Source: Mobula hypostoma
Taxonomy: Eukaryota
Length of the DNA stretch: 64,000 nucleotides
Assembly (NCBI RefSeq): GCF_963921235.1
Contig: NC_086109.1
Span: 2,728,001 to 2,792,000, forward strand
Direction of reading: 5' to 3'
Shown here: one piece after another, positions 8,373-39,742 of the stretch
Layout: each line of letters starts with the position of its first letter
Numbering within the stretch: position 1 is the stretch's first letter
Translations under genes and position numbers: made by a program
The notes under the pieces: model-generated
The model's database searches: none
Told to the model about the DNA's origin: nothing
What the model saw: the letters and a program-made list of their open reading frames with translations, nothing else

Positions 8373-8534
8373 CTGTGGGACAGAAAGCAGAGGTGACAGG
8401 GTCTGTACTGAAACTATTCCCACTTTACCCCATCTAACCCCTCTCTCCCATCCCAGTTGTCCCCTCTCTACCCACCCCCTCACTCTGCCTCCCCCAAATA
8501 CTAGACTCAATGACAGAGTGTCAGATACACTTGC

Positions 8535-8684
8535 CTTCAGTCCCTGAAGTTACTTCCCTTCCCTCAGGTCTTCTCCTCCATGTGACCGTGAGGACCACAG
8601 TGAGGGCAAAGATCAGGAGGGTCCACATCACTAACAATCTGATCACCCAGGTCACTGCATCTCCCGCTGCTGTTGCTTTAGGGG
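8535..8684 (-). CDS. Gene A transmembrane exon PKATAAGDAVTWVIRLLVMWTLLIFALTVVLTVTWRRRPEGREVTSGTE
   Basis: Acceptor tttgttacAG; 150 nt; phase 1-1; hydrophobic stretch followed by an RRR stop-transfer; donor AG|GCAAGT. Confidence 0.85.
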
Positions 8685-8819
8685 CTGTAACAAAGAGGAG
8701 AAAAGATTTCCTGATGAATCCAGTCCTCACGTTCCCAGTGACACAGGATTGATGAATTCACTCCATCCCTCCTCAGTCGAAGAAAACTCCCTGTCACCTC
8801 AACACGGTCCCTCAGTACT

Positions 8820-9300
8820 CTACAATCACCATCACGTAACTACCCTCCAAACCCCACCTCTCCACCCCGCTCCCCTCCCTTCCAACATCCTTCAGACCCT
8901 CCACCCCATTCCCTCCAATCTCCATCATATCATGGTCCTGCACTACTCCCCTCCGATACCCATCAGTCCCCTCAGTCCCCATTCTCTCCAATCACTATCA
9001 AATCACTCCCCTCCCTTCTCCTCCATTCCAATATGCCTCAGTCCCTCCATCTACATTCCCTCCAATCAACATCACATCACTGTCCTGCACCTCTCCTCTC
9101 CTCTCCAATACCCCTCAATCGCCTTGCTCCCCATTTCCTCTAATCACCATTACATCACTGTCCTGCACCTCTCACCTCCCCTCCAATACCCCTCAGTCCT
9201 CTCTCCATCCCCATTCCTCCAATCACCATTACATCACTCCCCTCCCTTCTCCTCCTCTCCAATACCCCTCAGTCCCCTCATCCCCTAGTCAATATCACAT
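8820..9300 (+). repeat. Pyrimidine-rich degenerate tandem repeat in the C2-TM intron (shorter counterpart ~39880-40140)
   Basis: Recurrent units such as tccaatcaccattacatcactgtcctgcacctctc and ccaatacccctcagtcc. Confidence 0.75.
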
Positions 9301-9702
9301 CACAGCCCTCCACCACCCTTCTACACTGTGGTGCTCCCACAGGTACACAGAAGAAGAATACAGTTGACAGACATATTTGGAAATGTTTGTGACAGGAATT
9401 AAGGAAATGGTAGAGGAACCAAAACTGAAGTTCCCATCTTCTCAAACAAAGGTACAAAAAATCTCCCAGAAATACAGAGACCCTGTGGCCTTAAACAGCG
9501 AGGAAAGAAAAGATGTTCTCTAAAACTCATCCAATCCCTCAGTCACCCCTCACACATCCTCAGTTCCCTGTAACACAGACTCTCTCCACTGCTGTTAATC
9601 ATTTCCCTCATCCATTCCCTCGATAACCCCTCTTTCTCAGTGCCTGTACCATCGACTGCAAATCCACTCATGTTCATCCAGTTCTTTCTCACTGACTTCA
9701 GG

Positions 9703-9983
9703 ATTGAAGGACGTTCTTTTAGAACTGAGTTGCGGAGAAATTTAGTCAGAGGGTGGTAAATCTGTGGAATGTGTTGCCACGAGCGGCTGTGAAGGCCAAG
9801 GGTGTATTTAAGGCAGAGATAGGGAGGTTCTTGATTAGCCAGGGCACCAAAGGGTGTGCGGTGAAAGCAGGGGAGTGGGGATGACTGGAAGAATTGGATC
9901 AGCCCATGATTGAATGGTGGAGCAGGATGGATGGGCTGAATGGCCTACTTCTGCTCCTATATCTTATGGTCTTATGGTCTTAT
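9703..9983 (+). mobile_element. CR1 3' fragment (duplicate ~40532-40812)
   Basis: gagggtggtaaatctgtggaat...ggcctacttctgctcctatatc with a (CTTATGGT)n tail. Confidence 0.8.
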
Positions 9984-10013
9984 GATTGTTTTGTGTCTGA
10001 TATTACCCTCGCT

Positions 10014-10433
10014 TGTCACAACCACAGATTCGGCAGCACAGTAGATACGGCAATCGCACTTGTGAATTTGCACGTGTTGGGTAATTATTATTTAATCGTG
10101 ATAGTATTTAACTACATTCTTGTCGTCGTAGTGCTTGTCGAGACTTGGACAGAGCATAGCAAAGCTTCACTGCCATTTTGCATTCGGCCGTCCCTGAGCC
10201 ATTGGACTTTCAAAACCAACTGACTCTGAAGACTAACGGTATTCGTTTAATGTTTAGATATTCTTTTCGGCCGCAGTGTAGGCTTCATTTCCCTTTTGAG
10301 AGTTTTAGTTAACGACCCTGCTTGGCCTAGCATTTATTGTTTTATTTTCCCTTTTTTGAATTAAAGTCTGAACTATCGACCTGTTTCAGTGTCTCTCACT
10401 CCGCACTTGGGCCATATCGGAACCGTGGTGACA
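10014..10433. mobile_element. Solo LTR-like element, 420 bp
   Basis: TGTCAC...GTGACA inverted termini. No convincing TSD. Shared with gene B at 40843-41262. Confidence 0.65.
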
Positions 10434-10948
10434 CTGCTTCCTGACACTGTCACCAGGAACCCCTCTTCCCCATCACCGTGTATCACTGAATGTATCCACT
10501 GATACTGACTGAGTTCCTCACGTTTTCCCTTCATCCCTCCTCTCCACAAACTCCCGGAGTCACTAAATGTATGTCCAGTGATGTCATTCAATCTCCCTTA
10601 CCTAGTTCCTCAGAAACCCCTCTTCCTCAGTCTCCAGTGCCACAGACTGTTTCTCCACTGATGTTAATCCTGTTCCCTCACACTATCCCTCTGCAGCCCC
10701 TCTCCCCTCGTGTCTTTGTCCCTGTCTGTATCTCTGATGATGTTGATCCAGCTCCCTGACACTGTCCATTACTGCTCAGTGAGATTTGCCCCGTTCCCCG
10801 CAGAACTGAGGCTGAGTCAATGTCCTGATCCGGCTGCTCCGGGCTTCGTGTCTGCAAACGTCGCAACAATTTTCCCCATTGTGTGATGATCGGAGACTGA
10901 GTCAGTGTCCTGTTCCGGCTGCTCCAGGCTTCGTGTCTATGGACTCAC

Positions 10949-11973
10949 TGTTACACTGGAGGGTGCATTGGCAGCAAGGGTGGACTCAAATGCAAGACAC
11001 ATCCTGTGAGGTTACTTAGATTTAGTTTATTGTTCGATACCAGGAGAGCAAGGCACGAGCAGGAAATAGCGAACTGGTCAAGGACTGAGGACTACGACTA
11101 GGCTGGGACCAAGGGTCTGGTCTAGAACTCGGAAGCGGCTCCCAGAACTAGAGGAGACATGAAGAGGCTAGGGTATGGACTCCAAGCCCAAGACTGGGCA
11201 AGGACCCAGTACCTGGGTCTTGCCTCGGGCTCGGACCCCAGAACCAGGCATGGACATGACATGGGCTAGGGAGAGGAGGAACATGGGAAAACAGAGCCTC
11301 GGTCTCGGGAGAGCAGGTACATGGAACCATAGACACATACACAGAACACAGAGTCGGGACCCCTCCTTGGGCACAGGACATAGGGCCGGGACTCATGACC
11401 CTCCGCGGGGCAACGTAGAGACGGCCTGACTTATCCCACGGAGGCGAGGACACGACAAGACAGAACATGATCCCGCTACGGGGCAACGGCAAGACGGCCT
11501 GATCTACCCCACGGAGGCGAGGACAAGACGTGACAAGACATGACCCCCCGTGGGGCAATGGCAAGACAGCCTGACTTACCCCCACGGAGGCGAGGACAAG
11601 ACAAGACAAGACCAACACGAATGAACACCAGACAGTATCTATCTAGCTCTGGTGATGGAACTAGACTGAAGTACAGGCGGGGGCTGCAGACGAGGGCTAG
11701 AGGCGAGAGGGACAAAGAAGGGATTCAGACAAGGGGGTAGGACAGGAATCACAGACCGCCAGGCCCAGGACTTGACTTGGAGCCTCCGGGTAGTGGCGAG
11801 CTCTCGACTCGGCCCGGGAACAGTAAACAACGGTTCTTGATTCCCTCCGGCGGGTTAACTGACGGACCCACCTTGGTGAGGAAACTTTGCAGGCTCGCTT
11901 TGGCGAGGTAACTGGACAGGGTTGCTCCGGTGAGGAAGGGCGAATTAAAGGGACCCCGATCTGGACCATGACA
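10949..11973. mobile_element. Solo LTR-like insertion, 1025 bp, specific to gene A
   Basis: TGTTACA...TGACA ends; 5-bp TSD CTCAC at 10944-10948 and 11974-11978; empty site ggactcactggttaat at ~41685; internal ~60-bp repeats at ~11415-11610. Confidence 0.85.
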
Positions 11974-12539
11974 CTCACAGGTTAATCCAACTCTCACATT
12001 CCCCCTCTAAAATCACTCACAGCAAGGGTCCTGTATCATAGACCAGATCTCCACAAATATTAGTCCAATTCTGTCAAAAAGAAAACTCTCAGTAAACCCC
12101 CTTCCCCAGCATATGTGCCATGGATTGTATTTCCACTGATTTTAATCCAGCTCCCTCACACTGGCCCTCAGTAACCCCTCTCCTCAAGCTCAGCCTCCAC
12201 CTCCCTGAACACTCAGTGCCTCAGCTATCCAAAATAATCCTTCCCTCCAATCTAATCACTCCCTCCCTCCAGCAACAGAGCACAGTTGATTCAGTGTGGA
12301 CCTTCTGCAAAATGTACTGCAGTTCCTCACCCAGGCTGTGCTGGCAAATATGAGCAGAGGCCTGAGTATAAAATACAAAAAATGAAGGTTGCCGATAAAG
12401 TAAATGGTTCTCTACAGTATCCTCTCAAACACTGTCAGAGTGCAGAATAGATACAAACTGAAGCTGCTCTGTGCTGTCCCATCTCACACTCCTGGGACGG
12501 GGAGATAACTAAATCCCAGCTTCTTCCTCTGACACTCAC

Positions 12540-12824
12540 GACGTGTGTCCAGATTACAGACGTCCCCCAGCCGGACCTGTGCGGTGTCCTCACTGATGGA
12601 GTTGCTGGCCTCACACCTGTACACATCATCCTCGATCTCTGCTGTGCAATCAACCTGTATCGTCTTTCCATCTTTCCAGAAGTGATGGCTGCTGTTGTCT
12701 CCTGTGACTTCTCCTCTCCACCAACTGAAGCCGGCAGGGTTGCCAGAGGTCACGGAACAGGTCAGGGTGAGGTTACAAGTCCCAGTGATGTTCTGAACTG
12801 TGATGTTTACTCCTGACATGGGCT
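12540..12824 (-). CDS. Gene A Ig C2-set exon, CD2/SLAM type (EPMSGVNITVQNITGTCNLTLTC...YRCEASNSIS...VCNLDTR)
   Basis: AG acceptor at 12826-12825 and GTGAGT donor at 12539; 285 nt; phase 1-1; CxxxxxC, W, YxC-x-A-x-N and a C-terminal C as in SLAM-family C2 domains. Confidence 0.9.
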
Positions 12825-14240
12825 CTGAGGGTGTGAGGGAGAGATGAAAGATGAATAAAGGAGAACCTTGTGGACACCTCGATCCCCAACTCCCCATCCC
12901 ATCCCCAACACTCCAGAGTGAATTTCAAGCCAATCCCACCTCATTTTCACCCAACGGTTTAACCCTTCCCTCACCAGTCACTTGCTGCTGGAGGATGTTC
13001 CCACGTGCACTACCCACATTAATCTACAAACTCTCCTCTATGTCCTCTTTATAGCGCTCTATTCCAGGAATTCTCTCCATTTCCATGTTGTTAGTTCTTC
13101 CTCTGTGCGGTCCCAGCACACAGGGAGAGAGGGTTTCTCAGACAAACATTGCTGAGTGAGATTATTGTGAATGTGATATTACTGTTTGAGTGAGTCAGGA
13201 ACCATATTGCTGTGTGTGAGTGTACTGTTGTGTCCGTGTCCTGTGTCACTCACTGGGACACTATATTCAGTGTAATGAATACACAGGGTCTCACTCAGCA
13301 CAGCACAGCATGAAGGCTGAGGAATAAACACCTTGCTGAGCTCAGACCTCAGTCTGGGCAATTAACCAACAGTGATACCCTCACTGTGTGTGTGCAGGGG
13401 TCAGGAGGTCAACTGAACGGACTCACAGTGACGACCACTCAGCCGGAATTGTCACTGGATCTGGGTCCCCCAAGCTCTCCTAAAGAGCTGGTTCAGCGCA
13501 ACTTGAGCCATCTCTGGGAAATGTCCCACAGGCTGCACCTCCCGTCCCCAGGGGGGTTCCTTCCACCGGCTGCTCCTGTACACTCTGCACTGTCCGACCC
13601 TCACCTGTTGCCTGGATCTCCAATGTCAGGTGGTGAGGGTGGAATCCCAGTTAGAGTCTGTCTGTGAGGACTCTGCCACTCCTCATAAGACCTTGGAGCA
13701 AAGAGGGTGAACAGTCCAATGCTACAGTTTCTGTTGTCTGAGAGGGTCAGAATTCCCTGTTTAGATGGATAGAGGTGTCTAGTGAGCTGCTGTCAGCAGC
13801 CTGTGCCCCACCAGGGGTGATTGGCTTCAGAAGGGTGTAAGAGAATCTAGCTGGATGTGGTAGTGGAGATGGTGTCTAGCCCGACCTACCGGACCAGGCT
13901 TCCTGTTCAATAGTTCACGTCTATACATTGTCGTCAATATCCTTTTGTCTATGTTCTCCCTGTTCCAACTGCTCCAAATCAGCCATTGACCAGATAATCT
14001 TGTAGCCAGCTTATCCCCACGGCACCCTGTCAGAGACACCTCCACATCCGCTTTCCCTATAGTTTTTACTTCTCCACAGTTCTAATGAAGAGTCTTTGAC
14101 CTGAAAAGTTGGCTGTTTTCTCATTCCACAAATGTGTCCTGAACTGCTGACTGCTTCCCTCTCCTGTATCATACGATGGAGACGGAGAGATTTAAAAAAA
14201 TGGATCAGAGTGTGTTTGGGGCTGCTTCTCTGGTTCTCAC

Positions 14241-14290
14241 CCATTTCCCAGCCACGTGCGGCTGTACAGTGAAGAAAGTGCTAAATACTC
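14241..14290 (-). other. Candidate start-codon exon ending ATG G|gtgaga; 5' boundary unknown
   Basis: ATG at 14244-14242 followed by a phase-1 consensus donor. Joined to the acceptor at 46164 of gene B it gives MGLIPLPITDLTYGLSCLVSSAG, a plausible signal peptide. No transcript evidence. Confidence 0.3.
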
Positions 14291-14679
14291 CTGCTCGTGG
14301 GACCACACGGATCTTTAGTACTCGGCCAGGTACGCCGTCTGGACCAGACACGTTAATGTAGGATGAGTGTAAACAGGTGGTCGATGGTTAGCATAGACTC
14401 GGTGGGTTGAAGGTACGAGTTCCCTGCAGTATCTCTCTCTGTCTCACTGCGGATGGCTTCTCCACACTGAGATGCTGGTCACTGAATCCACTGCAGGGCT
14501 GTGCCTGGATCACACTCAATAGTCACTTTATTCAATACAACCCGACGCCTGCCCGTTAACAAATACCAAATCAGCCATCATGTGGCAGCAACTCAGTGCT
14601 GATCTGCTGGGATTTTCACACACATCAAACTCTAGATACGACAGATAATGGTGATTGAAACTAAAAAAATCCATTGAGC

Positions 14680-14906
14680 TGCATTTCTTTGTGCAGACGT
14701 GCCTTGTTTATAAGAGAGGCTGGAGGGGAATAGCCAGAGTGGTTCAAGCTGACAGGAAGGTGACAGAAACTCAAATAACCACACGTTACAACAGTGCTGT
14801 GGAGAAGAAAATCTCTGATGCACAACACCTTGAACCTTGAAGTGGATGGGCGACAGCAGCAGAAGACCATGAACATACCCTTAGTGGCCACTTTATAAGA
14901 TACAGG
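14680..14906. mobile_element. Tc1/mariner-like remnant (duplicate ~46550-46780)
   Basis: Terminal-like motif catacccttagtggccactttataagatacagg preceded by gatgggcgacagcagcagaagacc. Confidence 0.55.
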
Positions 14907-15480
14907 ATGCTATCAATAAATGGCCGCAGAGTGTAAAATCTCCCCAGACACTAAGCAACCGGGGTTACATTCGCAAACATGATCACAAACGTCTTAATCT
15001 TTGTATTATTACCCAACCCACAAACACATCCTAACGCGGTTAATAGGATCAGGGAGGAATGACTCGGAGCCTGGTGTGGCTTTCAGTTCCTGTGACACTG
15101 ACATTAGTACTGGAGAAGGAGAGCACAGTTCCACTGGGACAGACTGTGATCAGAATTCCACTGAATCCAATCACGAGGGAGGTAGACTGAGTTTAAATTC
15201 CATAAAGCTGTGTTGGGAGGAGGACCCCAATGCTGGGAAATCTGGAAGGTTGAAGAGGAGCAACAAGGAAGGGGACAGGGGTCTCGATAACCAGGAGGAG
15301 TACAAACTGAATTTGTCTAAATCTAAACAAACTACTGAAGATCATATGTGTGAGTTCACTCTGCAGGAAAGTGATCATGATGCTTTTGTCATGGTGTCAG
15401 AACAACATAGACCTCAACATAATCAAGACAGAAGATCTAGTTGTTGACCCAAGGAGGAGTGTGTGTGTATACAACCCTGT

Positions 15481-18296
15481 CCTGAGAGCTTGGATACATA
15501 CATGGAATTATGATGTAGTGGCCATTACAGAGACTTGGCTGGCACCAGGGCAGGAATGGATTCTCAATATTCTTGGATTTCAGTGCTTTAAAAGGGATAG
15601 AGGGCGGAACAAGGGGAGGAGGGGTGGCATTACTGGTCAGGGATACTATTACAGCTACAGAAAGGGTGGGTAATGTAGCAGGATCCTCTTTTGAATCAAT
15701 ATGGGTGGAAGTCAGGAACAGGAAGGGAGCAGTTACTTTATTGGGGGTATTCTATAGGCCCCCTGGTAGCAGCAGAGATACAGAGGAGCAGATTGGGAGG
15801 CAGATTTTGGAAAGGTGCAAAAATAACAGGGTTGTTATCAAGGGTGACTTTAACTTCCCTAATATTGATTGGCACCTGATTAGTTCCAAGGGTTTAGATG
15901 GGGCAGAGTTTGATACGTGTGTCCAGGACGGATTCCTGTCACAGTATGCGGACAGGCCGACCAGGGGGAATGCCATACTAGATCTAGTACTAGGTAATGA
16001 ACCGGGTCAGGTCACAGATCTCTCAGTGGGTGAGCATCTGGGGGACAGTGACCACCGCTTCCTGGCCTTTAGCATTATCATGGAAAAGGATAGAATCAGA
16101 GAGGACAGGAAAATTTTTAATTAGGGAAGGGCAAATTATGAGGCTATGAGGCTATAAGGCTAGAACTTGCAGGTGTGAATTGAGATGATGTTTTTGCAGG
16201 GAATTTTACTATGGACATGTGGTCGATGTTTAGAGATCTCTTGCGGGATGTTAGGGATAAATTTGTCCCGGTGAGGAAGATAAAGAATGGTAGGGTGAAG
16301 GAACCATGGGTGACAAGTGAGGTGGAAAATCTAGTCAGGTGGAAGAAGGCAGCATACATGAGGTTTAGGAAGCAAGGATCAGATGGGTCTATTGAGGAAT
16401 ATAGGGAAGCAAGAAAGGAGCTTAAGAAGGGGCTGAGAAGAGCAAGAAGGGGGCATGAGAAGGCCTTGGCGAGTAGGGTAAAGGAAAACCCCAAGGCATT
16501 CTTCAATTATGTGAAGAAAAAAAGGATGACAGGAGTGAAGGTAGGACCGATTAGAGATAAAGGTGGGAAGATGTGCCTGGATGCTGTGGAAGTGAGCGAG
16601 GTCCTCAATGAATACTTCTCTTCGGTATTCACCAATGAGAGGGAACTTGATGATGGTGAGGACAATATGAGTGAGGTTGATGTTCTGGAGCATGTTGATA
16701 TTAAGGGAGAGGAGGTGTTGGAGTTGTTAAAATACATTAGGACAGATAAGTCCCCGGGGCCTGACAGGATATTCCCCAGGCTGCTCTATGAGGCGAGAGA
16801 AGAGATTGCTGAGCCTCTGGCTAGGATCTTTATGTCCTCGTTGTCCACGGGAAAGGTACCGGAGGATTGGAGGGAGGCGAATGTTGTCCGCTTATTCAAA
16901 AAAGGTAGTAGGGATAGTCCGGGTAAAAGTAGACCAGTGAGCCTTACGTCAGTGGTGGGAAAGCTGTTTGAAAAGATTCTTAGAGATAGGATCCATAGAC
17001 ATTTAGAGAATCATGGTCTGATCAGGGACAGTCAGCATGGCTTTGTGAAGGGCAGATCATGTCTAACAAGCCTGATAGAGTTCTTTGAGGAGGTGACCAG
17101 GCATATAGATGTGGGTAGTGCAGTGGATGTGATCTATATGGATTTTAGTAAGGCATTTGACAAGGTTCCACACGGTAGGCTTATTCAGAAAGTTAGAAGG
17201 CATGGGATCCAGGGAAGTTTGGTCAGGTGGATTCAGAATTGGCTTGTCTGCAGAAGGCAGAAGGTGGTGGTGGTGGGAGTATATTCGGATTGGAGGATTG
17301 TGACTCATGATGTCCCACAAGGATCTGTTCTGGGACTTCTACTTTTCGTGATTTTTATTAACGACTTGGATGTGGGGGTAGAAGGGTTGGTTGGCAAGTT
17401 TGCAGACGACACAAAGGTTGGTGGTGTTGTAGATAGTGTAGAGGATGGTCAAAGATTACAGAGAGATATTGACAGGATGCAGAAGTGGGCTGAGAAGTGG
17501 CAGATGGAGTTCAACCCGGAGAAGTGTGAGGTGGTACACTTTGGAATGACAAACTCCAAGGCAGAGTACAAAGTAAATGGCAGGATACTTGGTAGTGTGG
17601 AGGAGCAGAGGGATCTGGTGGTACATGTCCACAGATACCTGAAAGTTGCCTCACAGGTGGATAGTGTGGTTAAGAAAGCTTATGGGGTGTTAGCTTTCAT
17701 AAGCCGAGGGATAGAGTTTAAGAATTGCAATGTAATGATGCAGCTCTATAAAACTCTGGTAAGGCCACACTTGGAGTATTGTGTCCAGTTCTGGTCACCT
17801 CACTATAGGAAGGATATGGAAGAATTGGAAAGGGTACAGAGGAGATTTACCAGGATGCTGCCTGGTTTAGAAAGTATGCATTATGATCAGAGATTAAGGG
17901 AGCTAGGGCTTTACTCTTTGGAGAGAAGGAGGATGAGAGGAGATGTGATAGAGGTGTAAAAGATAATAAGAGGAATAGATAGAGTGGATAGCCAGCGCCT
18001 CTTCCCCAGGGCACCACTGCTCAATACAAGAGGACATGGCTTTAAGGTAAGGGGTGGGAAGTTCAAGGGGGATATTAGAGGAAGGTTTTTCACTCAGAGA
18101 GTGGTTGGTGCTTGGAATGCACTGCCTGAGTCAGTGGTGGAGGCAGATACACTAGTGAAGTTTAAGAGACTACTAGACAGGTATTTGGAGGAATTTAGGG
18201 TGGGGGCTTATATGGGTGGCAGGTTTTGAGGGTCAGCACAACATTGTGGGCCGAAGGGCCTGTACTATGCTGTACTATTCTATGTTCTATGTTCTA
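15481..18296 (+). mobile_element. 5'-truncated CR1 LINE with ORF2 endonuclease and RT
   Basis: EN motifs GDFNFP and LDLVL...DH (15573-16124); RT QHGF, DFSKAFDKVPH, PQGSVLG, FADDTK (16211-17959); (CTATGTT)n tail. Empty site cctgatcaaaacagc at ~47359; no TSD. Confidence 0.95.
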
Positions 18297-20233: not shown

Positions 20234-22093
20234 AACAGGTTATTTATTGATATTTATTTATATTTGCATTTTCACAATTTGTTGTCTATTGATCCTGTTT
20301 ACAGTTACTGTTCTATAGATTTGCTCAGTATGCCCGCAGAGAAAGAATCTCAGGGTTGTATGTGATGACATATATGTACTCTGATAATAAAACTTATTTT
20401 CAACTTCTTGAATAGAGACCTAGTCTATTACCCACACTAGCGACATGTCAGACCCACCACATCAGAAACCAGTCTGGTGAATCTTTGTGACAATTCCCCT
20501 TAAACAGCATTCATTTCTCACCCATTATCACAGATTCCAACATTGTCCCCGCTCCCAGTGTCAGCTGGGGAGATGTGTGGTTCCCAGTTTTCTCTCTCTC
20601 CCTCCTTCTTGAAACAGTCTGTCGGAACCATTCCTGAAACTGTAGAGTTTGCCAGGTGATAACCAGAAAGTTGAGTAACTCTACTGACACCTTGCCACAG
20701 ACTCCGGGATGGAGATCATCAGGCCTGTGTCAATTATCCATTTTCATGATGTTATTTCATCATGGATGCTGATTGATTTTATTTCTACACTTGCATTCAA
20801 CACCTGTCTATCCTGTATTTCTGGCAGGTTTTTGTGTGTTCCACAAAGACACACAAAAAGCCATGGTTACTTCCTCTACTGTTCCTTCATTCCCCATTAC
20901 AAAGACCCATGTCTGTCTGTAAGGGAACTACAGTTGTACCTGCTGCTGTGTTTGTTTCATGTCCTGATTCCGGCTCTCACAATCTGTTCTTAATATCCTT
21001 CAACTTCCATTTTCACTTTCTTCAACGATATATCTGTGACCCTTTGCTGTGTTCGTAATCAATCTCAATCCTCAGGTTTATGACTAATTCTGCAGGTTAA
21101 CACCCATTTCAGGCAATGATATCAGGATTTTATTTATTATTCTCTCTCACAGTTTGTATGCCCATTATTGTGATTTGGGCTATTGACAGATCGACAGTCT
21201 GTCTGCCGAGAGAGAGTGAAAACCAGCACTTGGGACCAAAAACGAAGATGACTGTTAACAATTTCCACTCTCATTCTCCATTCCAGTGTCCCCCACACCC
21301 GCCACTTCTTGCCCCCACCATCCACCATTCCTACAGCGATTCCCCATCAGGATCTTTTCCCATGAAACATCTCCAGACCAGATCCCAGTTCCTGGGTTCT
21401 GAGGGGTCCTAGGTCACATCTACTGATTTCCACATCTCTGCCAATCCTTCCCAATCCTGTGAACAACTGATACCTGTTTCTCAAGCTCCGTTTCCAGAAT
21501 TAGAAACAGAATGGTTCCATGGCTACAGAAAAAACTAATCTTCGGACCCAATACCCACCAGTAACCGAATTTTTCTTGCTCTCCATGTCAAACTCGTATT
21601 TTATGAGAGTGTGACAGGAGAGGCAGCTTCACTGTGCCCATCCTACACTCTCGGTGCCCTGGTAGTGAGGGACCCAGAAATGCCCAAGTCCACATCAACA
21701 GAGAACCTGGAGAGAAGGATGTTAAAGACAAAGACTTGCTCTGAATCAAACTTACAGAGTGAGGCGCAGAGAGTTAGCCAGCAGGAGATCAGCAGATGCC
21801 TGGTGTTCATTGTTCTCACAGAACAGTGTAGACGTTGGTGGGCTGCACAAAGCTTCATCCCCTAGTCAGTACGTTGTGAACAGCAGTCGACAAGAAAGTA
21901 GGTGTTGTGCAAAAGGTGAAATACAGAGGTGTGATCACAAGCAGAAAGCCACAGCGCTCGACGTCATGAGCGGACTGACTGATGTCAGTATTTCACCTCA
22001 CACCAAATAAGAACAATAAAATCAGGAGGATTTTTGACCCCTTGTTCCTGCTCCACAATCAATGAGACTATGACTGATCTTTTATCACATCAC

Positions 22094-25000
22094 AGACAAG
22101 ATCACACAAGGCGGAGCAGAAATAGGCCATTCGGCCCATCGAGTCTGCTCCGCAGCTCCCCATGAGCTAAACTATTCACCCATCTAGTTCCAATTTCCGG
22201 CTTTTTCCCCATATCCCTTGATACCCTGACTAATTAGATACCTGTCAATCTCCTCCTTAAACAGCCTCAATGATCGGGCCTCCACAGCTGTATGTGGCAA
22301 CAAATTCCACAAATCCACGACCCTCTGGCTAAAAAAATTTCTCCTCAAATCTGTTTTATCTGGGTCTCTAATTCTAAGACTATGGCCTCTTGTCCTGGAC
22401 TCACCCACAAAGGGAAATAACCTTTCCACATCTACTCAGTCCAACCCTTTCAACATTCGAAATGTTTCTATGAGATCCCCTCTCATTCTTCTATACTCTA
22501 ATGAATACAATCCAAGAGCCAACAAACGCTCCTCATATGTTAGCTCCTGCATTCCAGGAATCATCCTCGTAAATCTTCTCTGAACTCTCTCCAACATCAG
22601 TATATCCTTTCTAAGATAGGGGGCCCAAAACTGCACACAGTATTCCAAATGAGGTCTCATTGATGCCCCATAGAGCCTCATCAACACCTCCTTACTCTTA
22701 TACACTATTCTTGAAATGAACGCCAACATAGCATTCGCTTTCCTTACCGCTGAACCAACTTGGTGGTTAACCTTTAGGGTATTCTGCATGAGGATCCCCA
22801 AGTCCCTTCCCACTTCTGATTTTTGAATTTTCTCCCCATCTAAATAATAATCTGCCCAATTATTTCTTCTTCTGGAATGTACAACTGTACATTTGTCAAC
22901 GTTGTATCTCATCTGCCATTTCTTTACCCACTCTCCTAAACTGACTAAGTCTCTCTGCAACCTTTCCGTATCTTCAACATTTCCTGCTCCTCCACCTATC
23001 TTGGTGTTGTCCGCAAATTTAGCCACAGAACCATTTAATCCATAATCCAAATCATCGATATACATCGTAAAAAGAAGCGGCCCCAACAACGACCCCTGCG
23101 GAACACCACTAGTAACCGGCAACCAATCAGAATAAGATCCCTTTATTCCCACCCTTTGCTTTCTGCCTATCAGCCAATGCTGCACCCATTTCAATATCTT
23201 TCCTATAATTCCGTGGGCTCTCATCTTATTAAGCAGCCTCATATGCGGCACCTTATCGAAGGCCTTTTGAAAATCCAAATACACAACATCCACAGCCTCT
23301 CCCTTGTCAATCTTATTCGAAATTACCTCAAAAAATTCCAATAGGTTGGTGAGACAGGATCTTCCCTTCATGAAACCATGCTGGCTTCGGCCTATCTTAT
23401 CATGCACCTCGAGGTATTTCATAAACTCGTCCTTGAGGATTGACTCCAATATCTTTCCAACTACCGATGTCAGACTAATAGGTCTGTAATTTTCTTTTTG
23501 CTGCCTCGTTCCTTTCTTAAATAATGGAACTACATTTGCAACCTTCCAGTCCTCCGGAACCATGCCAGAGTCTATTGATTCCTGGAAGATCATTTCCAAT
23601 GCTTCCACAATCTCCAAAGCCACCTCCTTCAGAACCCTTGGGTGCACCTCATCCGGGCCGGGAGACTTATCTATTCTTAGTCCACTTAGCTTCCCAAGCA
23701 CTTTCTCTCTAGTAATCTTGACTGTACCTAATTCTATTCCCTGATACCTCTGGCTATCAGGTATATTGCTCATGTCTTCCACTGTGAAGACTGATGCAAA
23801 ATACTCATTCAGTTCCTCCGCCATCTCTTTGTTATACATTATAATTTCTCCAGCATCATTTTCAGTCGGTCCCTTATCTACCCTTGTCACTCTTTTACTC
23901 TTCATATATTTAAAAAAACTCCTAGTATCCTTTTTTATGTTAATCGCCAACTTCCTTTCATCTTTTCTTTCCTAATGACTTTCTTAATTTCCTTCTGTAA
24001 GTTTTTAAAGGTCTTCCAGTCCTCATTTTCCCCACTAATTTTTGCTTCCTTGTACGCTGTTTCTTTTGCTTTTATTTTTGCCTTAACCTCTCTCGTTAGC
24101 CACATTTGTGCCATTTTTCCATTCATGATTTTCTTTTTTCTTGGAATATATTTTTCCTGCATTTTCCTTATTTCTTGTAGGAATTTCATCCAATTCTGCT
24201 CTACAGTCCCTCCATTTAGCATACTTTTCCAATCAACGTGGGCCAGTTCCTCTCTCATACCACTGTAATTTCCCCTGTTCCACTGAAATATCGACACACC
24301 TGATACCAGCTTCTCCTTTTCAAATTTGAAACTGAACTCAATCATATTATGATCACTACTTCCAAGGGGTTCCTTTACCTCCAGCTCCCTAATCGCCTTA
24401 GGTTCATTACACAGCACCCAATCCAAAACAGCCGGTCTCCTGGTGGGCTTCTGGACAAGTTGCTCCAAAAAGCCATCCTGTAGGCATTCTACAAACTCCC
24501 TCTCCTGAGATCCATTACCTTCCCAACTTTCCCAATCCACTTTCATATTAAAATCCCCCATAATTATCTTGACATTGTCCTTCTGACACACTTTTTCTAT
24601 TTCCATCTGCAACTTGTAGTCCACAACCCGGCTGCTGTTTGGAGGCCTGTATATAACTGCTATTAGTGTCTTTTTACCCTTGCCATTTCTTAATTCTACC
24701 CATAAGGATTCTACCTCTTCTGATCCTATGTCCCTTCTTTCTATTAATTTGATATCGTTACTTACCATCAGTCCACGCCACCCCCTTTACCTACCTTCCT
24801 ATCTTTCCTATACACTGTGTATCCTTGGATATTCAGCTCCCAATCACATCCATCATTTAGCCATGACTCGGTGATGGCCACAATGTCATATCTTTTAACC
24901 TGCAGCTGTGCAGCAAGGTCATCCACTTTATTTCTAATGCTGCGTGCATTTAAGTACAGTACATTTAGATTAGTATCTGTTGTCGATTTTGCTATATTTC

Positions 25001-25495: not shown

Positions 25496-27399
25496 CACAT
25501 TACCACAGTCCTGACCAAAAGAACAGAAAAGCCAACATAAAGTGGTGGATATGGCCCAGTCCATCACAAGAAAAACCCTCCCCACCACTGAGCAGATCTA
25601 CAAGGAGCACTGCGACAAGAAAGCAACGTGCATTATCAAGGACCCCGACCATCCAGTCCATAATCTCCTTTCATTGCTGCTGTCAGAAAGGAGGTACGGA
25701 CCTCAGGTTCCACACCACCAGGTTCAGGAACAGTTACACATCAGACTCCTGAACCAGTGTGGATAACTTCACAGACCGCAACTCTGAATTGATTCCACAA
25801 CCTATGGACTCACTTTCAATGATTTCATGTTGTAGAGCATATGAGGAGCATTTGATGGCTCTGGGCCTGTACTCACTGAAATTTGGAAGATTGAGTGGAA
25901 ATTTCATTGAAACCTATCGAATGTTGAAAGACCTCGTCAGAGGACATAAGAGGACACTTCTTATGGTGGAGGGGTGTAGGACCAGAGGACACAGCCTCCA
26001 AATAGAGGAACGTCCATTTACCCTGATCCAACACCATCTCCATTTTTTTCTCCATTTGCCTCTTCCTCTGCCCACCTGACCAAACAATCTCATCTCCCGG
26101 AAATCTGAAGCTTTCATACAACAAAGCAAGGGATTGAAAGCACATCCTGTGGATTGTCAGTCATGAAGGAATTTAAAAACTGTAGAACACTGAATGAGCC
26201 AGGGAAAGGGTGAACGGTAAAAACAAATATATACTTTGTAGTGGAAGGAATGGAGGCTGCCAGTTTATGTGTGTTCGCTGTGGCCACCATTTTGTGAGCT
26301 GGCTCCCCCCGGGACGGTTTGATCAGAGCAGCAAAAAGTAGATACAGTGGGGTCGACAATCTGATAAATAAGAAATCATTTTCAAATAAAAAGCTGTTTT
26401 TGATTTCGTCGGACTGACAGGCTTATCAAAGAAACAGCCTGTGTGACCTGAGGAAGACTGAGCTGCGTATTTGATTGAACTAGGTTGAACAAAGGAAGTG
26501 ACATGGGGCAAGAACAGTAAATTAATACAGTTTGTGGCCTTGTGCGCGGGTAGAATGTGGGGGAGGTGATGGGATTAATGAAATGGTATTGCTGTAAAGT
26601 GGTGTTTGATGATCGGTGTTCACTCATGAATCAAAGGGCCGGTTTCGGTGCTGTTTGACCCCATGGACGGCAGAGGAAGTCAGAGAACGGACAAGGCAGC
26701 TGAGAGAGCAGCAGAGACGCTGAAGGAGACAAGGAGCTTCATGGATGGGAATTCCCAGTGAGAGAGCTCCAGAATGTCTGCGGAGAAGAAAGAAACAGCG
26801 GGAGGGATGGAGTTGTCAGTGCTTTCTGATTCAGGGTGTGGACAAGCAGAGAACCCAGAAGTGACTACAATGATGAAGGGTCTGCACACCCACTCAACAA
26901 GTCTCAAACATATGTTCCAGCTCTCTACTCAGAGTCCCCCATTACAACTGGTCTTGCCCACCAAACAGACATGAGAGAGCGCAGAGGAGGGAGGGATCCC
27001 ACCACGTACAGACTCTACATCTGCTTCTGGAACAATGGCAGCGTGCTCAGACACAGCGGCCACTCCGGTGTATTTGTTCATCCTGTACGTCTATTTTACA
27101 TCCACAAGTCACTGCCAGAGACTCAGAACATCAGTTACTGCAGGACTACCCCATCAGCGACTTGCTTGATATTGATGGAGCTTGACTTGTCACGTACATT
27201 TGTGCCCAGACTGTGCGCGGTCCTAAAAAGGTACGGTCGATTGCCTTGGACATTTAGTATAGTGATCACAAGACCCTGTTGAACAACAATATACTGCAAG
27301 TTTAGTTTACTCATTCTTTGGAGAGACCAATGACGGGGGAATTGCATTGACTCAGTTGTTACGTGAACAAATTGTGCTGCTGGATCTCCAGATGACCAT

Positions 27400-29480: not shown

Positions 29481-29944
29481 TGTTACACTCGCTTCACCTA
29501 GTGGCTTAATATAGGGGGCGATAACCCCCTGCCCTGCCAAACTTAAGAAATCTCGTTTGGGTGGATGCTGCGCGATATGTCCCCTGTTACAAATCAGTAC
29601 CCCGAAATAACAAAGAGTACACAATATGTGACTAAACAATTAAGCTTTATAACTCTTAATTTGACTATATGGTTAGTAGAGAAACAAAATATAGAAGAAA
29701 GCCGGCCCAAATTATATTAACCTTTCTGTGCACGCAAAGTTGGAGCTCACGGTGTCCCCTTCGCTGATCCTCCTTCGATCGTCCCTGCCCTTCGGTCCCT
29801 CGCTCCGAGTCCACCCCATCCGGCAGACTACCAAATCACTCCATGCGTGTTTTCTCTCTTCATCTCTCCCTCTCCCTCTAGCAAAAGCCAGTGAAAACAG
29901 CTGCTTCCAGAATCACCAGACACAGCCACAAAACTCGTATGTAT
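29481..29944. mobile_element. Related LTR-like fragment with a non-clean right junction
   Basis: Starts tgttacac and shares gggtggatgctgcg...gtacc..gaaataaca...caagttggagctcacgg with 28515-29092. Confidence 0.6.
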
Positions 29945-32900
29945 ATAGTTGTACTAAAATCCATATAGATCACATCCACTGCACAACCCTCATCCATATG
30001 CCTGGTCACCTCCTCAAAGAACTCTATGCGGCTTGTTAGACATGATCTGCCCTTCACAAAGCCATGCTGACTGTTCCTGATCAGACCATGATTCTCTAAA
30101 TGCCCAGAGATCCTACCTCTAAGAATCTTTTCCAACAGCTTTCCCAGCACTGACATAAGGCTCACTGTTCTATAATTATCCAGACTATCCCTACTACCTT
30201 TTTTGAACAAGGGGACAACATTCGCCTCTCTCCAATCCTCCGGTACCATTCCCGTGGACAACGAGGACATAAAGATCCTAGCCAGAGGCTCAGCAATCTC
30301 TTCTCTCGCCTCATAGAGCAGCCTGGGGAATATCCTGTCAGGCCCCGGGGACTTATCTGTCCTAATGTATTTTAACAACTCCAACACCTCCTCTCCCTTA
30401 ATATCAACATGCTCCAGAACATCAACCTCACTCATATTGTCCTCACCATCATCAAGTTCCCTCTCATTGGTGAATACCGAGGAGAAGTATTCATTGAGGA
30501 CCTCGCTCACTTCCACAGCATCCAGGCACATCTTCCCACCTTTATCTCTAATCAGTCCTACCTTCACTCCTGTCATCCTTTTTTTCTTCACATAATTGAA
30601 GAATGCCTTGGGGTTTTCCTTTACCCTACTCGCCAAGGCCTTCTCATGCCCTCTTCTTGCTCTTCTCAGCCCCTTCTTAAGCTCCTTTCTTGATTCCCTA
30701 TATTCATCAATAGACCCATCTGATCCTTGCTTCCTAAACCTCATGTATGCTGCCTTCTTCCACCTGACTAGATTTTCTACCTCACTTGTCACCCATGGTT
30801 CCTTCACCTTACCATTCTAAGTCTTCCTCACCCGGACAAATTTATCCCTAACATCCTGCAAGAGATCTCTAAACATCGACCACATGTCCATAGTACATTT
30901 CCCTGCAAAAACATCATCCCAATTCATACCCGCAAGTTCTCGTCTTATAGCCTCATAATTTGCCCTTCCCTAATTAAAAATTTTCCTGTCTTCTTTGATT
31001 CTATCCTTTTCCATGATAATGCTAAAGGCCAGGGAGCGGTGGTCACTGTCCCCCAGATGCTCACCCACTGAGAGATCTGTGACCTGATCCGGTTCATTAC
31101 CGAGTACTAGATCTAGTATGGCATTCCCCCTGGTCGGCCTGTCTACATACTGTGACAGGAATCCATCTTGGACACAATTAACAAACTCTGCCCCATCTAA
31201 ACCCTTGGAACTAATCAGGTGCCAATCAATATTAGGGAAGTTAAAGTCACCCATGATAACAACCCTGTTGTTTTTGCACCTTTCGAAAATTTGCCTCCCA
31301 ATCTGCTCCTCTGTATCTCTGCTGCTACCAGGGGGCCTATAGAATACCCCCAATAGAGTAACTGCTCCCTTCCTGTTCCTGACTTCCACCCATATTGACT
31401 CAAAAGAGTATCCTGCTACATTACCAACTCTTTGTGCAGCTGTAATAGTACCCCTGACCAGTAATGCCACCCCTCCTCCCCTTTCCCCCCACCTCTATCC
31501 CTTTAAAGCACTGAAATCCAGGAATATTGAGAATCCATTCCTGAACTGGTGCCAGCCAAGTCTCTGTCATGGCCACTACATCATAATTCCATGTATGTAT
31601 CCAAGCTCTCAGTTCATCACCTTCGTTCCTGATGCTTCTTGCATTGAGGTACACACATTTCAGCCCTTCTACCTTACTGTCCTTACACCGTTTATTCTGC
31701 TTCTCTTTCCTCAAAGCCTCTCTGTATGTTAGATCTGGCTTTACTCCATGCACTTCTTTCACTGCTCTATCGCTCTGGGTCCCATCCCCCTTGCAAATTA
31801 GTTTAAACCCTCCCGAACCATGCTAGCAAACCTACCTGCAAGGATATTGCTCCCCCTCGAGTTCAAGTGGAACCCATCCAATCTGTACAGGTCCCACCTT
31901 CCCCAGAAGAGATCCCAATGATCCAAAAATCTAAAACCCTGCTCCCTGCAACAACTCCTCAGCCATGCATTCAACTGCCATCTCCTCCAATTCTTACCAT
32001 CTCTGTCACGTAGCACTGGCAGCAATCCTGAGAACGTCACCCTTGAGGTCCTGTAATTCAGCCTTCTGCCTAGTTCCCGAAACTCATCCCTCTTCCTGCC
32101 TATGTCGTTCGTACCAACATGTATCGCGACTTCTGGTTGCTTTCCCTCTCGCACCAGGATGTCGTGCACTCGATCAGAGGCATCCCGGACACTGGCACCC
32201 AGGAGGCAACAAACCATGCGGGTGTCCTTCTCACAAAGTCTCCTGTCTGCTCCCCTGACTAAAGAGTCTCGAATGACTACAGCTCTCCTCTTCTCCATCC
32301 CATCCTTCTGCACCACTGGGTCAGACTCAATTCCGGAGGCCCTACCACCGTGGCTCACACCTGGTCGGTCGTCCCCGCCAACAGAATCCAGGACGGTAAA
32401 CTTATTATTCAGGGGAATGGCTACAGGGGTGCTCTGCACTACCTGTCTGCTCACCTTCGCCTTCCCCCCTCTGACTGTCACCCAACAACCTGCTTCTGAC
32501 AGCCTAGGTGTGACTACCTCCCTGTAGCTCTCATCTATGACTGCCTCATTCTCCCTTATGAGTCGAAGGTCATCCAGCTGCTGCTCCAGATTCCTTACAC
32601 GGTCTTCCAGATCGCCCAGCCGCATGCACTTCTGGCAGATGTGACTCTGCGGGAGAGGGGCGTTCCCCCAAGACTGCCACATCTCACATGAGAGGCACAT
32701 CACTGTCTCAGGGGGCATTGTGAAGACTAACTGCGAGCTAGCTTGTCCTCCGCCTCTTCTCGTTGAAGCCTCTCGAGTCAAAGCCTCAAAGCTCCACTCC
32801 TTCACTGGCCCACTCACTCACTGGCCGCTTTCCACAGGGCCGCTCCGCTTGAGCTACCCCTCTATTTATCTGTTTGAGCTTTCCAAAATGCTTGGTCACC

Positions 32901-33095
32901 TGACCTCGACTGCCCAATCAGCTGCTTTCTGCTGAGTCTGAGCTATTCAAATATTGATTGTCTAATCAGCGGCTTTCTGCTGATCTATTCAAATCCTGAT
33001 TGACTTGATTGCACAGACCAACTGCCAAAACTGCCAGACTCTCTCGAGTCAAAGCCTCAAAGCTCCACTCCTTCACTGGCCCACTCACGCACTGA
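29945..33095 (-). mobile_element. CR1 LINE with 5' UTR, intact ORF1 (339 aa; zinc finger, coiled coil, GDSL esterase) and 3'-truncated ORF2; same family as 15481-18296
   Basis: ORF1 31798-32817 (CLSCEMW...CQKC, VHVGTND, HLNSRG); EN 30970-31762; RT to DFS at ~29950. A short tail of the same family lies at ~29200-29237. Confidence 0.92.
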
Positions 33096-36491: not shown

Positions 36492-37329
36492 ACGTCTTGG
36501 GAATCAAAATTGGCAGTAAAAACATCAGTAATTTCAGATATGCAGATGACACTGTGTTAATTGCAAGTACGAAGGAAGAACTACAAAACTTAATTGAAAT
36601 AATTGTTGAAGAAAGTGCAAAAATGGGTCTATCTTTCAATTGCAAAAGGACAGAATGTATGGTGATATCCAAAAAGAAGGAGAATCCTATCTGCAGACTG
36701 GGAATGAACGGGGAAGACATAAAACAAGTAAAGAACTTTTGCTACTTAGGAAACTGGGTGACATCAGATGGCAGGTGCGACATGGACATCAAAAGAAAAA
36801 TAGTGATGGCAAAAGATACCCTTACGAGAATGAAGAATATACTGACCAATACTTAACAAGGCATGACAACCCACCTCAGAGTACTGAAATGTTATGTTTA
36901 TCCAGTTATGTTATATGGCTCAGAATGTTGGACAATATCTAGTAACATGAGGAAACAAATTGTAGCAGCAGAGATGTTGTTCTTGAGGAGGATGCAAAGA
37001 ATATCATGGACGAAACGAATATCTAATGAGAATGTCATGAACAGAGCAAACACAAAAAGAGAAATAATGTATGAGATCATGAAAAGGCAACGTAACTTCA
37101 TTGGACGTGTGATTAGGAAAGAGGAGTTAGAATGCACGGTAATTATGGGAAAGATTGAAGGGAAGAAAGCAAGAGGAAGACAAAGACAAATGATGATGGA
37201 GACAGCAGCCAGAGAACTGGAAATGAATACCAATGAATTGATCCACTTGACCCGAAACAGGAGTGTGTGGGCCATGGCAGTCAAAGCTCAAACTGGGCAC
37301 AGCAACTGAAGATGATGATGATCATATGA

Positions 37330-37775
37330 GAAACATTTGATGGGTATGGGTTTGTACTCGCTGGAATTCAGAAGGATGAGGGGGGATCTCATATGAAACC
37401 TTTTGAACGTTGAAAGGCCTAGACAGAGTACATGTGGAAGGAAAGTTTCCCATGGTGGGAAAGTCTAGGACAAGAGGGCACAGCCTCAGCATAGAGGGGC
37501 GCTCTTACAAAACAGAGATTCGGTGAAATTTCTTTAGCCAAAGGGTGGTGAATTTGTGGAATTTGTTGCCACATGCAGCTGTGGAGGCCAGATCGTTGGA
37601 TATATTTAAGGCAGAGATTGATACGTTCTTGATTGGACATATCATCAAAGGTTACGGGGAGAAGTCTGGGAACTGGGGTTGAGAAGGAGAGAAAAAAAAT
37701 CCACCATGATTGAATAGTGGAGCAGGCTTGATGGGCCAGATGGCCTAATTCTGCTCCTATGTCTTATGGTCTTAC
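37330..37775 (+). mobile_element. CR1 3' fragment
   Basis: LGLYSLEFRRMRGDL-like remnant and ggcctaattctgctcctatgtcttatggtctt tail. Confidence 0.8.
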
Positions 37776-38244
37776 GGCCTTATTCATTTATTTATGAACT
37801 GCAGTAGAAGTTGGGGTAAATAGATCAATGATTTACAGGGGACATGTTCCCACAAAATCTGTTCTGCTGCAGAAGGCTAGTGACAGCTGTTAAACTAATA
37901 TTCAATACCTACAAAGCACAGCAGGAAAGAGGGGCCAAGCTTTTGTCCCGTAGACCTCACCCCAACGGTGGGACTCAGAGGACCCCAGTATCACCCACCC
38001 ACCAGTCCATATTCAATCCCCCCTGAGAGTCTGTGCCATTCAGCAAGAAGAAGGATCATCGTAGACTGTCCAGGGGCTCTGTCCTCAGCCCATCCACGAT
38101 GGCGTCTGGCACGGTACATTACTGCTTCACAGTCAGTGGGGTGAGTCTGCAAACTACAACAGAAACACAAGTTGTCAGTCCACAATGGGTGAGTTAAGGG
38201 AAACAGAGACAGGACACACTGTGTCAGGGAGTCAGAGATTGGGA

Positions 38245-38560
38245 CACCCAGAGACAGGACCCAGGAAAAGGGAGATACAAACCAGGACGCAGACAGGAAG
38301 ATACAGACCAGGACACAGGGACAGGGTAATACAGACCAGGACACAGACAGGGAGATACAGACCAGGACCCAGGGACAGGGTAACACAGACCAGGACACAG
38401 ACAGGGTAATACAGACCAGGATCCAGGGACAGGAAATACAGACCAGGACCCAGGGACAGGAAGTACAGACCAGGACACAGAGACAGGGAAATACAGACCA
38501 AAACATCAAGACAATGAGATACAGACCAGGGCCCAGTTAGGGAGCTACAGACCAGGACGA
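38245..38560 (+). repeat. ~20-bp minisatellite (atacagaccaggac.cagggacagg); a second short array at ~38865-39060
   Basis: Direct tandem units with variable length and no unique spacers. Confidence 0.85.
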
Positions 38561-39271
38561 AGTTAGGATATGGAAGCAGGGAGATACAGAGACAAGGACT
38601 CTGGAGAGGGGAGACATTGAGACTGGGCACATCGACACGTGACACATGGACACAAAAGACCTGGACATGCAAAGCGACACACAATGATGGAAACTCAGAT
38701 CACCCCATCAGCACCAATCAACTGACAAACAATGATACTAACCTAGCATCAGCATGGCCTCATTCTCAGTGCATTCTGAATGAATTCACACACTGTCCAT
38801 CGACACGAGTATTAAATCCATGACTGATCATCAGAAATGCACATACTACTGGGCATAACTGCATGTATAGGGACAGGGTAACCCAGTGACTGGGAGTGTG
38901 GGGACAGGGTACCCCAGTGACTGGGTGTGGGGGGGAGAATGTACCTCAATGACTCGGTGTGTTGGGGACCGTGTATCGCAGCGACAGTGTGTGGGGTTGG
39001 TGTCAGTGTAGCCCAGTGACTGGGAGTGTGGGGACAGTGCGCTCAGTAACTGTGTGTGTGTACGCGGAGTGGACAATTACTGTTAGATCTGCCAGACCAG
39101 GCCTGGAGATCACTGAGGCAAAGTTTCAATTGACTCCTCAGTGGTATGTGGGTTCTTGCTGTGCCCCCGTCTGTGCGCTGCTGAGTTCCACAGTGGTGGT
39201 TGGAACGATCTCCGGTGACGGGGACCTGTGGTTGATTCTGGGATTGTGCAGATTACATGTAGGCCTTATGT

Positions 39272-39429
39272 TCAGTCTGCCCTGAGGAGGGTGAGTGACC
39301 CAGAGTGGCCTCTTTCCAGGGGTAATGTGTCTGTCATTACCCTGTCATTCCCCTTGGGGGGCTGCCAGACACTACGATTCTTCTGCATCCTCTGAAGATT
39401 TGTGTAAATGATGTCCGTCTCCACTTGGT
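39272..39429 (-). CDS. Gene B cytoplasmic exon (D)QVETDIIYTNLQRMQKNRSVWQPPKGNDR..., with ITIM-like IIYTNL; 3' end uncertain
   Basis: Acceptor tttctgtcccacAG at 39431-39430, phase 1. It either reads to TGA at 39272 or uses the donor AGG|GTAATG at 39340. Confidence 0.7.
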
Positions 39430-39592
39430 CTGTGGGACAGAAAGGAGAGGTGACAGGGTCTGTACTAAAACTATTCCCCACTTTACCCCATCTAACCCCT
39501 CTCTCCCATCCCTATTGTCACCTCCCTGCCCACCCCCTCTCTCTCCCTCCCCCAAATACCAGACTCAACGACAGGGTGTCAGATCCACTCGC

Positions 39593-39742
39593 CTTCAGTC
39601 CCTGAAGTTACTTCCCTTCCCTCAGGTCTTCTCCTCCGTGTGACTGTGAGGACCACAGTGAGAGCAAAGATCAGGAGGGTCCCCACCACTGAGAGTACGA
39701 TCATCAGCATCACTGAGTCTAACGCTGCTGTTGTTTTAGGGA
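39593..39742 (-). CDS. Gene B transmembrane exon PKTTAALDSVMLMIVLSVVGTLLIFALTVVLTVTRRRRPEGREVTSGTE
   Basis: Acceptor ctgtgttacAG; 150 nt; phase 1-1; donor AG|GCGAGT. Confidence 0.88.

Follow-up and report, generated by a model that had tools for sequence, protein, structure and literature searches.

A probable relic copy and an intact SLAM-like receptor gene in a receptor cluster of the ray Mobula hypostoma

The question raised by a 64 kb stretch of the genome of the ray Mobula hypostoma (NC_086109.1, positions 2,728,001 to 2,792,000; hereafter the window) is whether two related genes on its minus strand, referred to here as gene A and gene B, form a pair of activating and inhibitory immune receptors or whether one of them is a dead copy. 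A preliminary description had proposed such a pair, derived from the CD2/SLAM family, on the basis of an arginine in the transmembrane (TM) segment of gene A and a neutral TM segment with a downstream tyrosine motif in gene B. Self-comparison of the window shows that the two loci constitute a minus-strand segmental duplication (8331-15485 in A, 39388-47362 in B) with blocks that are 88-97% identical and are separated by large insertions and deletions. In these blocks lie exons for a V-set domain free of cysteines, a C2-type immunoglobulin (Ig) domain, a TM segment and a short tail. On our reading of the exon structure, to which we assign a probability of about 0.72, gene B is intact and gene A would be a truncated, V-less dead copy with an Arg-type anchor, the arginine lying in a tract of different ancestry.

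An annotated gene and a partial duplicate

Gene B corresponds to the M. hypostoma gene annotated as 'SLAM family member 8-like' (XP_062922452.1). The C2 exon is 100% identical to that protein and the placed exons, when joined, translate exactly to its 274 residues (Table 1). The V exon matches the Pfam V-set domain (E = 6 × 10−13) and encodes no cysteine, and the C2 exon gives Pfam Ig_3/ig matches and encodes four. A Cys-free V-set domain followed by a C2 domain with cysteines is the layout of the CD2/SLAM family; gene B has it and gene A retains only the C2 exon. The best matches among sequences of solved structures in the PDB are a CD48/CD2 chimera (3 × 10−9), SLAMF6 across both domains (5 × 10−8) and CD48, with CEACAMs scoring nearly as high as these. 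Both the domain pattern and the sequence matches to solved proteins bear out the CD2/SLAM origin that had been suggested. Relatives in RefSeq carry the names SLAMF8-, SLAMF9-, SLAMF5- and CD48-like, and the ray genes are named SLAMF8/9-like because their tails are short.

Gene A is most likely a non-functional relic, as its exon structure suggests: a partial duplicate with a deleted V exon, a stop codon at the first splice junction, a cut tail and no public protein. The V-bearing segment of gene B is absent from gene A, where the two flanks meet at 13374, and a deletion of about 1 kb would have removed the V exon. No second V exon was found in the window by tblastn with nine family proteins, and Pfam searches of all open reading frames (ORFs) in the A-specific insert beside the deletion junction returned no Ig signal. 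The final T of the leader exon and the initial AG of the C2 exon together make TAG, and a direct splice therefore reads ..CASL followed by a stop. No public protein with the TM segment of gene A was recovered in three database searches that did recover the neighbours of gene A. The caution in the preliminary description that gene A may be a pseudogene is well supported by the missing V exon, the TAG at the leader-C2 splice and the lack of a public protein.

The tail of gene A is short, as had been noted, although the cause is a rearrangement junction and not a point change. Homology between A and B ends inside the first cytoplasmic exon, after ..AATCGCAGTG; beyond this point gene A continues as a 98.6% identical copy of 26548-26688, where the next duplication unit with a leader begins, and a four-base microhomology (TCTG) lies at the junction. 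The stop codon of the short tail is supplied by the foreign side. A microhomology-associated junction with the next duplication unit would thus have cut the tail after ..KNRSV. The tail obtained by reading through the TM exon is free of tyrosine, and a spliced product would keep the motif IIYTDL, the retention of which had been given as a second caveat and is confirmed here. The C2 exons of A and B encode domains that are 89% identical. Four replacements in the C2 domain are unique to gene A, one of them a change of Val to Asp within the conserved EDVVYRC motif, and the derived C2 residues of gene B are common to its two annotated neighbours, as would be expected if those three genes had been homogenized and gene A left out.

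The annotated product of gene B ends ..SGTEGEWI, four codons past the TM exon, so that the default product has an uncharged TM segment, a 19-residue tail and no IIYTNL. This last motif fits the I/V/L/S-x-Y-x-x-L/V/I pattern of an immunoreceptor tyrosine-based inhibitory motif (ITIM) and can be reached only through a splice donor of the GC type. Gene B had been credited with IIYTNL and a longer tail: the exon that encodes the motif is present, but the M. hypostoma model stops before it and inclusion needs the GC donor. Models of the orthologue in M. birostris (P0047, P0008) splice at this donor (..SGTE-DQAETGIIYTNLQRMQKNRSVWQPPKGNDR) and then either read through or continue as FVGPEVV-CRLTPLTARQ. 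The small FVGPEV exon of these models had no match in the window (degenerate pattern, two mismatches) and the 3' structure given for gene B is thus provisional. The frameshift in the last exon is also found in the M. birostris orthologue; in the frame used by Hypanus, the tyrosine of an immunoreceptor tyrosine-based switch motif (ITSM) is replaced (PTDCEAV). The sole poly(A) signal downstream of gene B lies beyond the last exon.

Transmembrane exons and the position of the arginine

With splice sites placed, the TM exon of either gene measures 150 nt. The two exons have 21 nt differences, and 18 of these fall within the first 60 nt; 11 whole codons and the split first codon change, for a total of 12 residues. 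These counts agree exactly with those given previously, as does their concentration in the N-terminal half. Mismatches per 40-nt window number about 2 in the flanking intron, and 6 and then 12 in the divergent tract. Given a background of 5.7%, at least 18 mismatches in 60 nt have P = 3.7 × 10−9, and the cluster is therefore not due to chance. We read the 60-nt tract as a sequence that probably has a different ancestry, either a short patch of gene conversion or an older type of TM segment that has been retained, rather than as proven selection. Positive selection on the TM segment was considered and rejected, with a ratio of replacement to silent changes in the tract of 14:3 that does not depart from the neutral expectation (p = 0.54).

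In gene A, 27 apolar residues separate an Asp from an RRR stop-transfer signal; the arginine is residue 7 and falls in the outer (N-terminal) third of this hydrophobic span. We computed sliding sums on the Hessa biological scale (Hessa et al. 2005). The lowest-energy core of gene A comprises the 18-19 residues just after the arginine, and the arginine falls within windows of 21 residues or more; the best TM segment of the neutral gene B begins 5 residues upstream of the equivalent position. By this estimate, the arginine marks the outer edge of the hydrophobic core, a placement that is no proof of burial and no argument against it. The TM-boundary check that had been proposed thus puts the residue on the margin of the most favourable core and not clearly inside it.

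The arginine had also been described as of the NLIR/NLLR type, which is not borne out, as there is no Asn at position -3 and gene A has Trp there. The NxxR motif is a mark of receptors that couple to FcR-gamma, including Xenopus members of the CD2/SLAM family (PMC4536121).

Tails, splice donors and intact paralogues

The donor that follows the TM exon reads GC rather than GT in A and in B, in an otherwise perfect consensus, and every short-tailed model from Mobula and Hypanus terminates in the residues that this donor region encodes (EG[KE]x[IM], then a stop). From this pattern, the GC donor may be a conserved weak site from which products with and without a tail can arise. Downstream of the C2 exon, the intron likewise remains open in frame in both genes (RECQRKKLGFSYLPVPGV, then a stop), and one Hemitrygon model ends exactly with this read-through. 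The C2 donor also seems, from these models, to be variably used in the SLAM-like family of rays.

Neither window gene contains an intact ITSM (TxYxxV/I). The earlier statement that no ITSM is visible holds in this sense; however, a decayed ITSM exon is present in gene B (Table 1), and paralogues have TEYAAV. The canonical motif (..AETNPTEYAAV..) occurs in full-length relatives, namely XP_062922454.1 of M. hypostoma (P0046), three proteins of M. birostris and one of Hypanus. Full tails with both IIYT[DN]L and TEYAAV are found in P0046, P0010/P0048, P0011 and P0014.

Three intact proteins from the two Mobula species have an arginine at the position seen in gene A: P0002 (XP_062922453.1) of M. 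hypostoma, and P0049, with an additional Lys, and P0012 (XP_072133766.1), with a second Arg, of M. birostris. All three have short, tyrosine-free read-through tails (..EG[KE]xI). Lysine occurs one position earlier in P0046, P0010 and P0048. Neutral TM segments are combined with short tails in P0001 and P0004 and with long tails in P0008, P0011 and P0014. P0002, a neighbour in the same subfamily, is 87% identical to gene B overall and 99% identical in the C2 domain; unlike gene A, P0002 and P0046 are intact and annotated. The stalk of P0002 differs from those of genes A and B by an insert, and the Arg-type paralogues carry this 13-residue stalk insert (REKPLLLSVTAVP), which is related to the read-through of the C2 intron. 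The short-tailed P0009 (XP_072133767.1), adjacent to P0012 in M. birostris, has Glu where P0012 has its second Arg (VVETLL versus VVRTLL); most paralogues have Gly at this position and gene A has Trp (8623-8625). As judged from the opposite charges, P0012 and P0009 could be partners.

Deeper relatives came from a profile-free HMMER scan of 1.8 billion representatives, and the TM and tail part of P0002 as a query returned no new family members. Among the deeper relatives, a second, older ray lineage (P0033, P0037, P0040 and P0134) has a conserved TM arginine and tyrosine-free tails as far as Hemitrygon. Among the 189 retrieved proteins on which the test of TM charge against tail motif drew, 9 of 10 Arg-TM proteins were without Yxx[LVI], compared with 29 of 64 others (p = 0.014, counted per protein).

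The ray genes resemble mammalian SLAMF8 and SLAMF9, and the ITSM-bearing SLAMF1, 3, 4, 5, 6 and 7, in the V + C2 ectodomain with a Cys-free V domain, and the TxYxxV of the ITSM-bearing group is matched by TEYAAV in the tails of full-length ray paralogues. They differ from mammalian SLAMs in that the short tails come from reading through a splice donor and in that the membrane-proximal motif is ITIM-like (IIYTxL) and not an ITSM. To our knowledge, a charged TM segment has not been described for mammalian SLAMs.

An N-terminal TM arginine and a short tail, as in the intact ray paralogues, are also features of mammalian Ig receptors coupled to FcR-gamma (activating LILR, NCR1/NKp46, GPVI, Fc-alphaRI and OSCAR; PMC4536121). 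These belong to a different Ig family, that of the leukocyte receptor complex (LRC) with C2-type domains, and their NxxR is lacking in the ray. The ray arginine is followed by 19-20 apolar residues up to the cytoplasmic stop-transfer signal. In the mammalian receptors about 16-17 apolar residues follow the arginine. The closest parallel is the set of Xenopus CD2/SLAM-family receptors with NxxR TM segments (Guselnikov et al. 2011, Immunogenetics 63:679, as summarized in PMC4536121). As in that summary, the ray family is an expanded non-mammalian one in which some members have a basic residue in the outer TM segment and others have tyrosine motifs. The ray genes differ in the absence of Asn at -3, in belonging to a cartilaginous fish, in an adaptor binding that is only putative and in the V-less condition of gene A. 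Akula et al. (2014) reported no FcR-gamma in sharks (PMC4016189). Our literature search found no paper on shark or ray SLAM genes and nothing recent on FcR-gamma in cartilaginous fish.

Weighing the readings

That genes A and B work as a pair, with A signalling through its TM arginine and an adaptor with an immunoreceptor tyrosine-based activation motif (ITAM) and B inhibiting through its ITIM, is very improbable. The arginine in A and the neutral segment in B fit this idea, as do the ITIM-like exon that M. birostris orthologue models splice in and the existence of short-tailed Arg-TM paralogues. However, gene A is without a V exon and cannot share the ligand-binding domain of gene B; similar ligand-binding ectodomains are seen instead between gene B and P0002. 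The leader-C2 splice of A gives a stop, A keeps IIYTDL and is absent from protein databases, and the annotated product of B is without the ITIM. On these exon structures, A and B are not a working activating/inhibitory pair, contrary to the original proposal. It is even less credible that gene A is expressed from another start as a V-less decoy or accessory chain of C2 domain and Arg-TM segment. Its C2 and TM exons are open with intact splice sites, and a public Hypanus model (P0007) consists of C2 and TM only, but splicing from the canonical leader creates TAG, no public protein matches, and no alternative signal-peptide exon was found at 12.8-21.8 kb, a stretch that holds a LINE (long interspersed nuclear element) reverse-transcriptase ORF.

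We acknowledge several points that weigh against an intact gene B beside a dead gene A with an Arg-type anchor. The C2 and TM exons of gene A keep open frames and good splice sites, and the ratio of nonsynonymous to synonymous substitution rates (dN/dS) of its C2 exon against that of gene B is 0.42; any inactivation would therefore be recent, and a transcript may still arise through an unusual first exon or cryptic splicing. The arginine of gene A would be either shared by descent with that of P0002 or independent. It lies at the edge of the lowest-energy core, and neither gene A (TWVIR, Trp at -3) nor P0002, P0049 and P0012 (LVIR, Leu at -3) has the Asn of the FcR-gamma-coupled receptors. Lys-TM paralogues keep both tyrosine motifs. 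Counted per lineage, 3 of 4 Arg-TM lineages are without Yxx[LVI] (p = 0.34), and a correlation between charge and tail is therefore not claimed; the association that the preliminary description had asked about runs in the predicted direction per protein but is not established per lineage. Any coupling to an adaptor is pure inference.

Several of these observations also bear on the possibility that the arginine is without a signalling role, both in gene A and in the intact paralogues, and snorkels to lipid head groups at the outer boundary, with short tails reflecting a separate, neutral decay of the weak donor in a family with fast turnover. The start of the lowest-energy core right after the arginine, the 20 apolar residues that then precede RRR, the absence of NxxR, the lineage-level p value, the short read-through tails of neutral P0001 and P0004, and the tyrosine motifs of Lys-TM members are all consistent with this. 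We nonetheless find it doubtful: six apolar residues precede the arginine, the best TM segment of the neutral paralogue starts 5 residues upstream, the arginine recurs at the same position in three intact proteins from the two Mobula species, the second ray lineage conserves a TM arginine with tyrosine-free tails, and there is the protein-level association noted above. At the other extreme, the cluster may be a true paired-receptor system in which tail-less Arg-TM members couple to a ray FcR-gamma, near-identical neighbours bear ITIM/ITSM tails, the GC donor acts as a switch and gene A is a recently killed activating copy, with opposite charges (Arg in P0012, Glu in P0009) that might let paralogues pair. 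From the sequences compared here, we consider such a system unlikely.

Under our preferred reading, gene A would be a dead copy that carries an Arg-type anchor. In intact paralogues, the arginine may recruit an ITAM adaptor with an acidic TM residue, for example FcR-gamma, and make them the 'on' partners of relatives with ITIM/ITSM tails. The activating/inhibitory idea thus survives, as an inference, only for the intact neighbours. Paired activating and inhibitory receptors are thought to arise repeatedly under pathogen pressure, and SLAM-family versions have been published only for Xenopus. The window displays the raw material of that process in this ray, in the form of duplication, exchange of sequence by tracts, variants of TM charge, decayed tail motifs and a copy that failed. 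Gene A should be left out of any count of functional activating receptors, and the genes of experimental interest are its intact neighbours.

Overall, we envisage a SLAM/CD2-like receptor cluster of M. hypostoma that would have expanded by segmental duplication amid LINE debris and of which the window (45% GC, with one 136-nt run of N) holds a part. Four copies of the leader exon (MNTRHLLISCWLTLC..) are present, each of them embedded in a repeat module about 3.6 kb long, and the modules are 93-98% identical. Each leader copy seems to belong to a SLAM-like gene of its own. The copy nearest the window start points off that end, and the plus-strand copy is the start of P0002, which is arranged head to head with gene B. 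Introns and intergenic space are filled with LINE debris that encodes reverse transcriptase, endonuclease and GDSL-esterase ORF1; several LINE copies are 93-98% identical and therefore young.

Table 1. Features of genes A and B and of their surroundings in the window
Feature	Position	Strand	Remark
Gene A leader exon (MNTRHLLISCWLTLCASL)	21756-21810	-	phase 1, T before GTAAGT; perfect donor
Gene A deletion junction	13370-13378	-	V-bearing ~1 kb of gene B (45400-46402) without counterpart
Gene A C2 exon	12540-12824	-	open frame, intact splice sites; begins AG
Gene A open intron after C2	12427-12540	-	
Gene A TM exon	8535-8684	-	read-through to TGA at 8521-8523 (..EGKCI, stop)
Gene A divergent 60-nt tract	8625-8684	-	18 of 21 differences; ~70% identity, flanks ~95%
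Gene A TM string	8590-8652	-	
Gene A Arg codon AGA	8638-8640	-	GTA (Val) in gene B at 39696-39698; Gly in Hypanus
Gene A GC donor	8529-8535	-	AAG/GCAAGT
Gene A first cytoplasmic exon (DPLETGIIYTDLQKNRSVL, stop)	8314-8372	-	cut at ~8318-8322 by junction of next leader module
Gene A IIYTDL	8338-8355	-	
Gene B leader exon	49840-49894	-	exon placement, matches XP_062922452.1
Gene B V exon	45784-46104	-	Cys-free V-set, only V exon of window; Pfam, tblastn
Gene B C2 exon	42254-42538	-	Pfam, exon placement
Gene B open intron after C2	42141-42254	-	
Gene B TM exon and annotated read-through to TGA	39579-39742	-	TM exon 39593-39742
Gene B TM string	39648-39713	-	
Gene B GC donor	39587-39593	-	AAG/GCGAGT after 39593
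Gene B optional cytoplasmic exon, ITIM-like	39341-39429	-	spliced in M. birostris orthologue models, not in M. hypostoma model
Gene B IIYTNL	39395-39412	-	
Gene B last exon, decayed ITSM	~38060-38153	-	frameshifted (CRLTPLTVKQ, stop)
Poly(A) signal downstream of gene B	37792		
Other leader exon copy	2120-2174	-	
Other leader exon copy	57602-57656	+	XP_062922453.1
LINE fragment	16211-17959	+	
LINE fragment	22436-24768	-	
LINE fragment	29878-32817	-	
LINE fragment	59299-61347	-	
Insertion in gene A intron	10853-11973		short tandem repeats at 11394-11612
Insertion in gene A intron	13503-14658		
Intronic tandem repeat, gene A	8860-9320		period ~70 nt
Intronic tandem repeat, gene B	39916-40150		period ~70 nt

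Two insertions of about 1.1 kb are found in the introns of gene A only, one of them with short tandem repeats; both are free of Pfam domains. Genes A and B each have an intronic tandem repeat immediately upstream of the TM exon, and the repeat of gene A exceeds that of gene B by about 230 nt.

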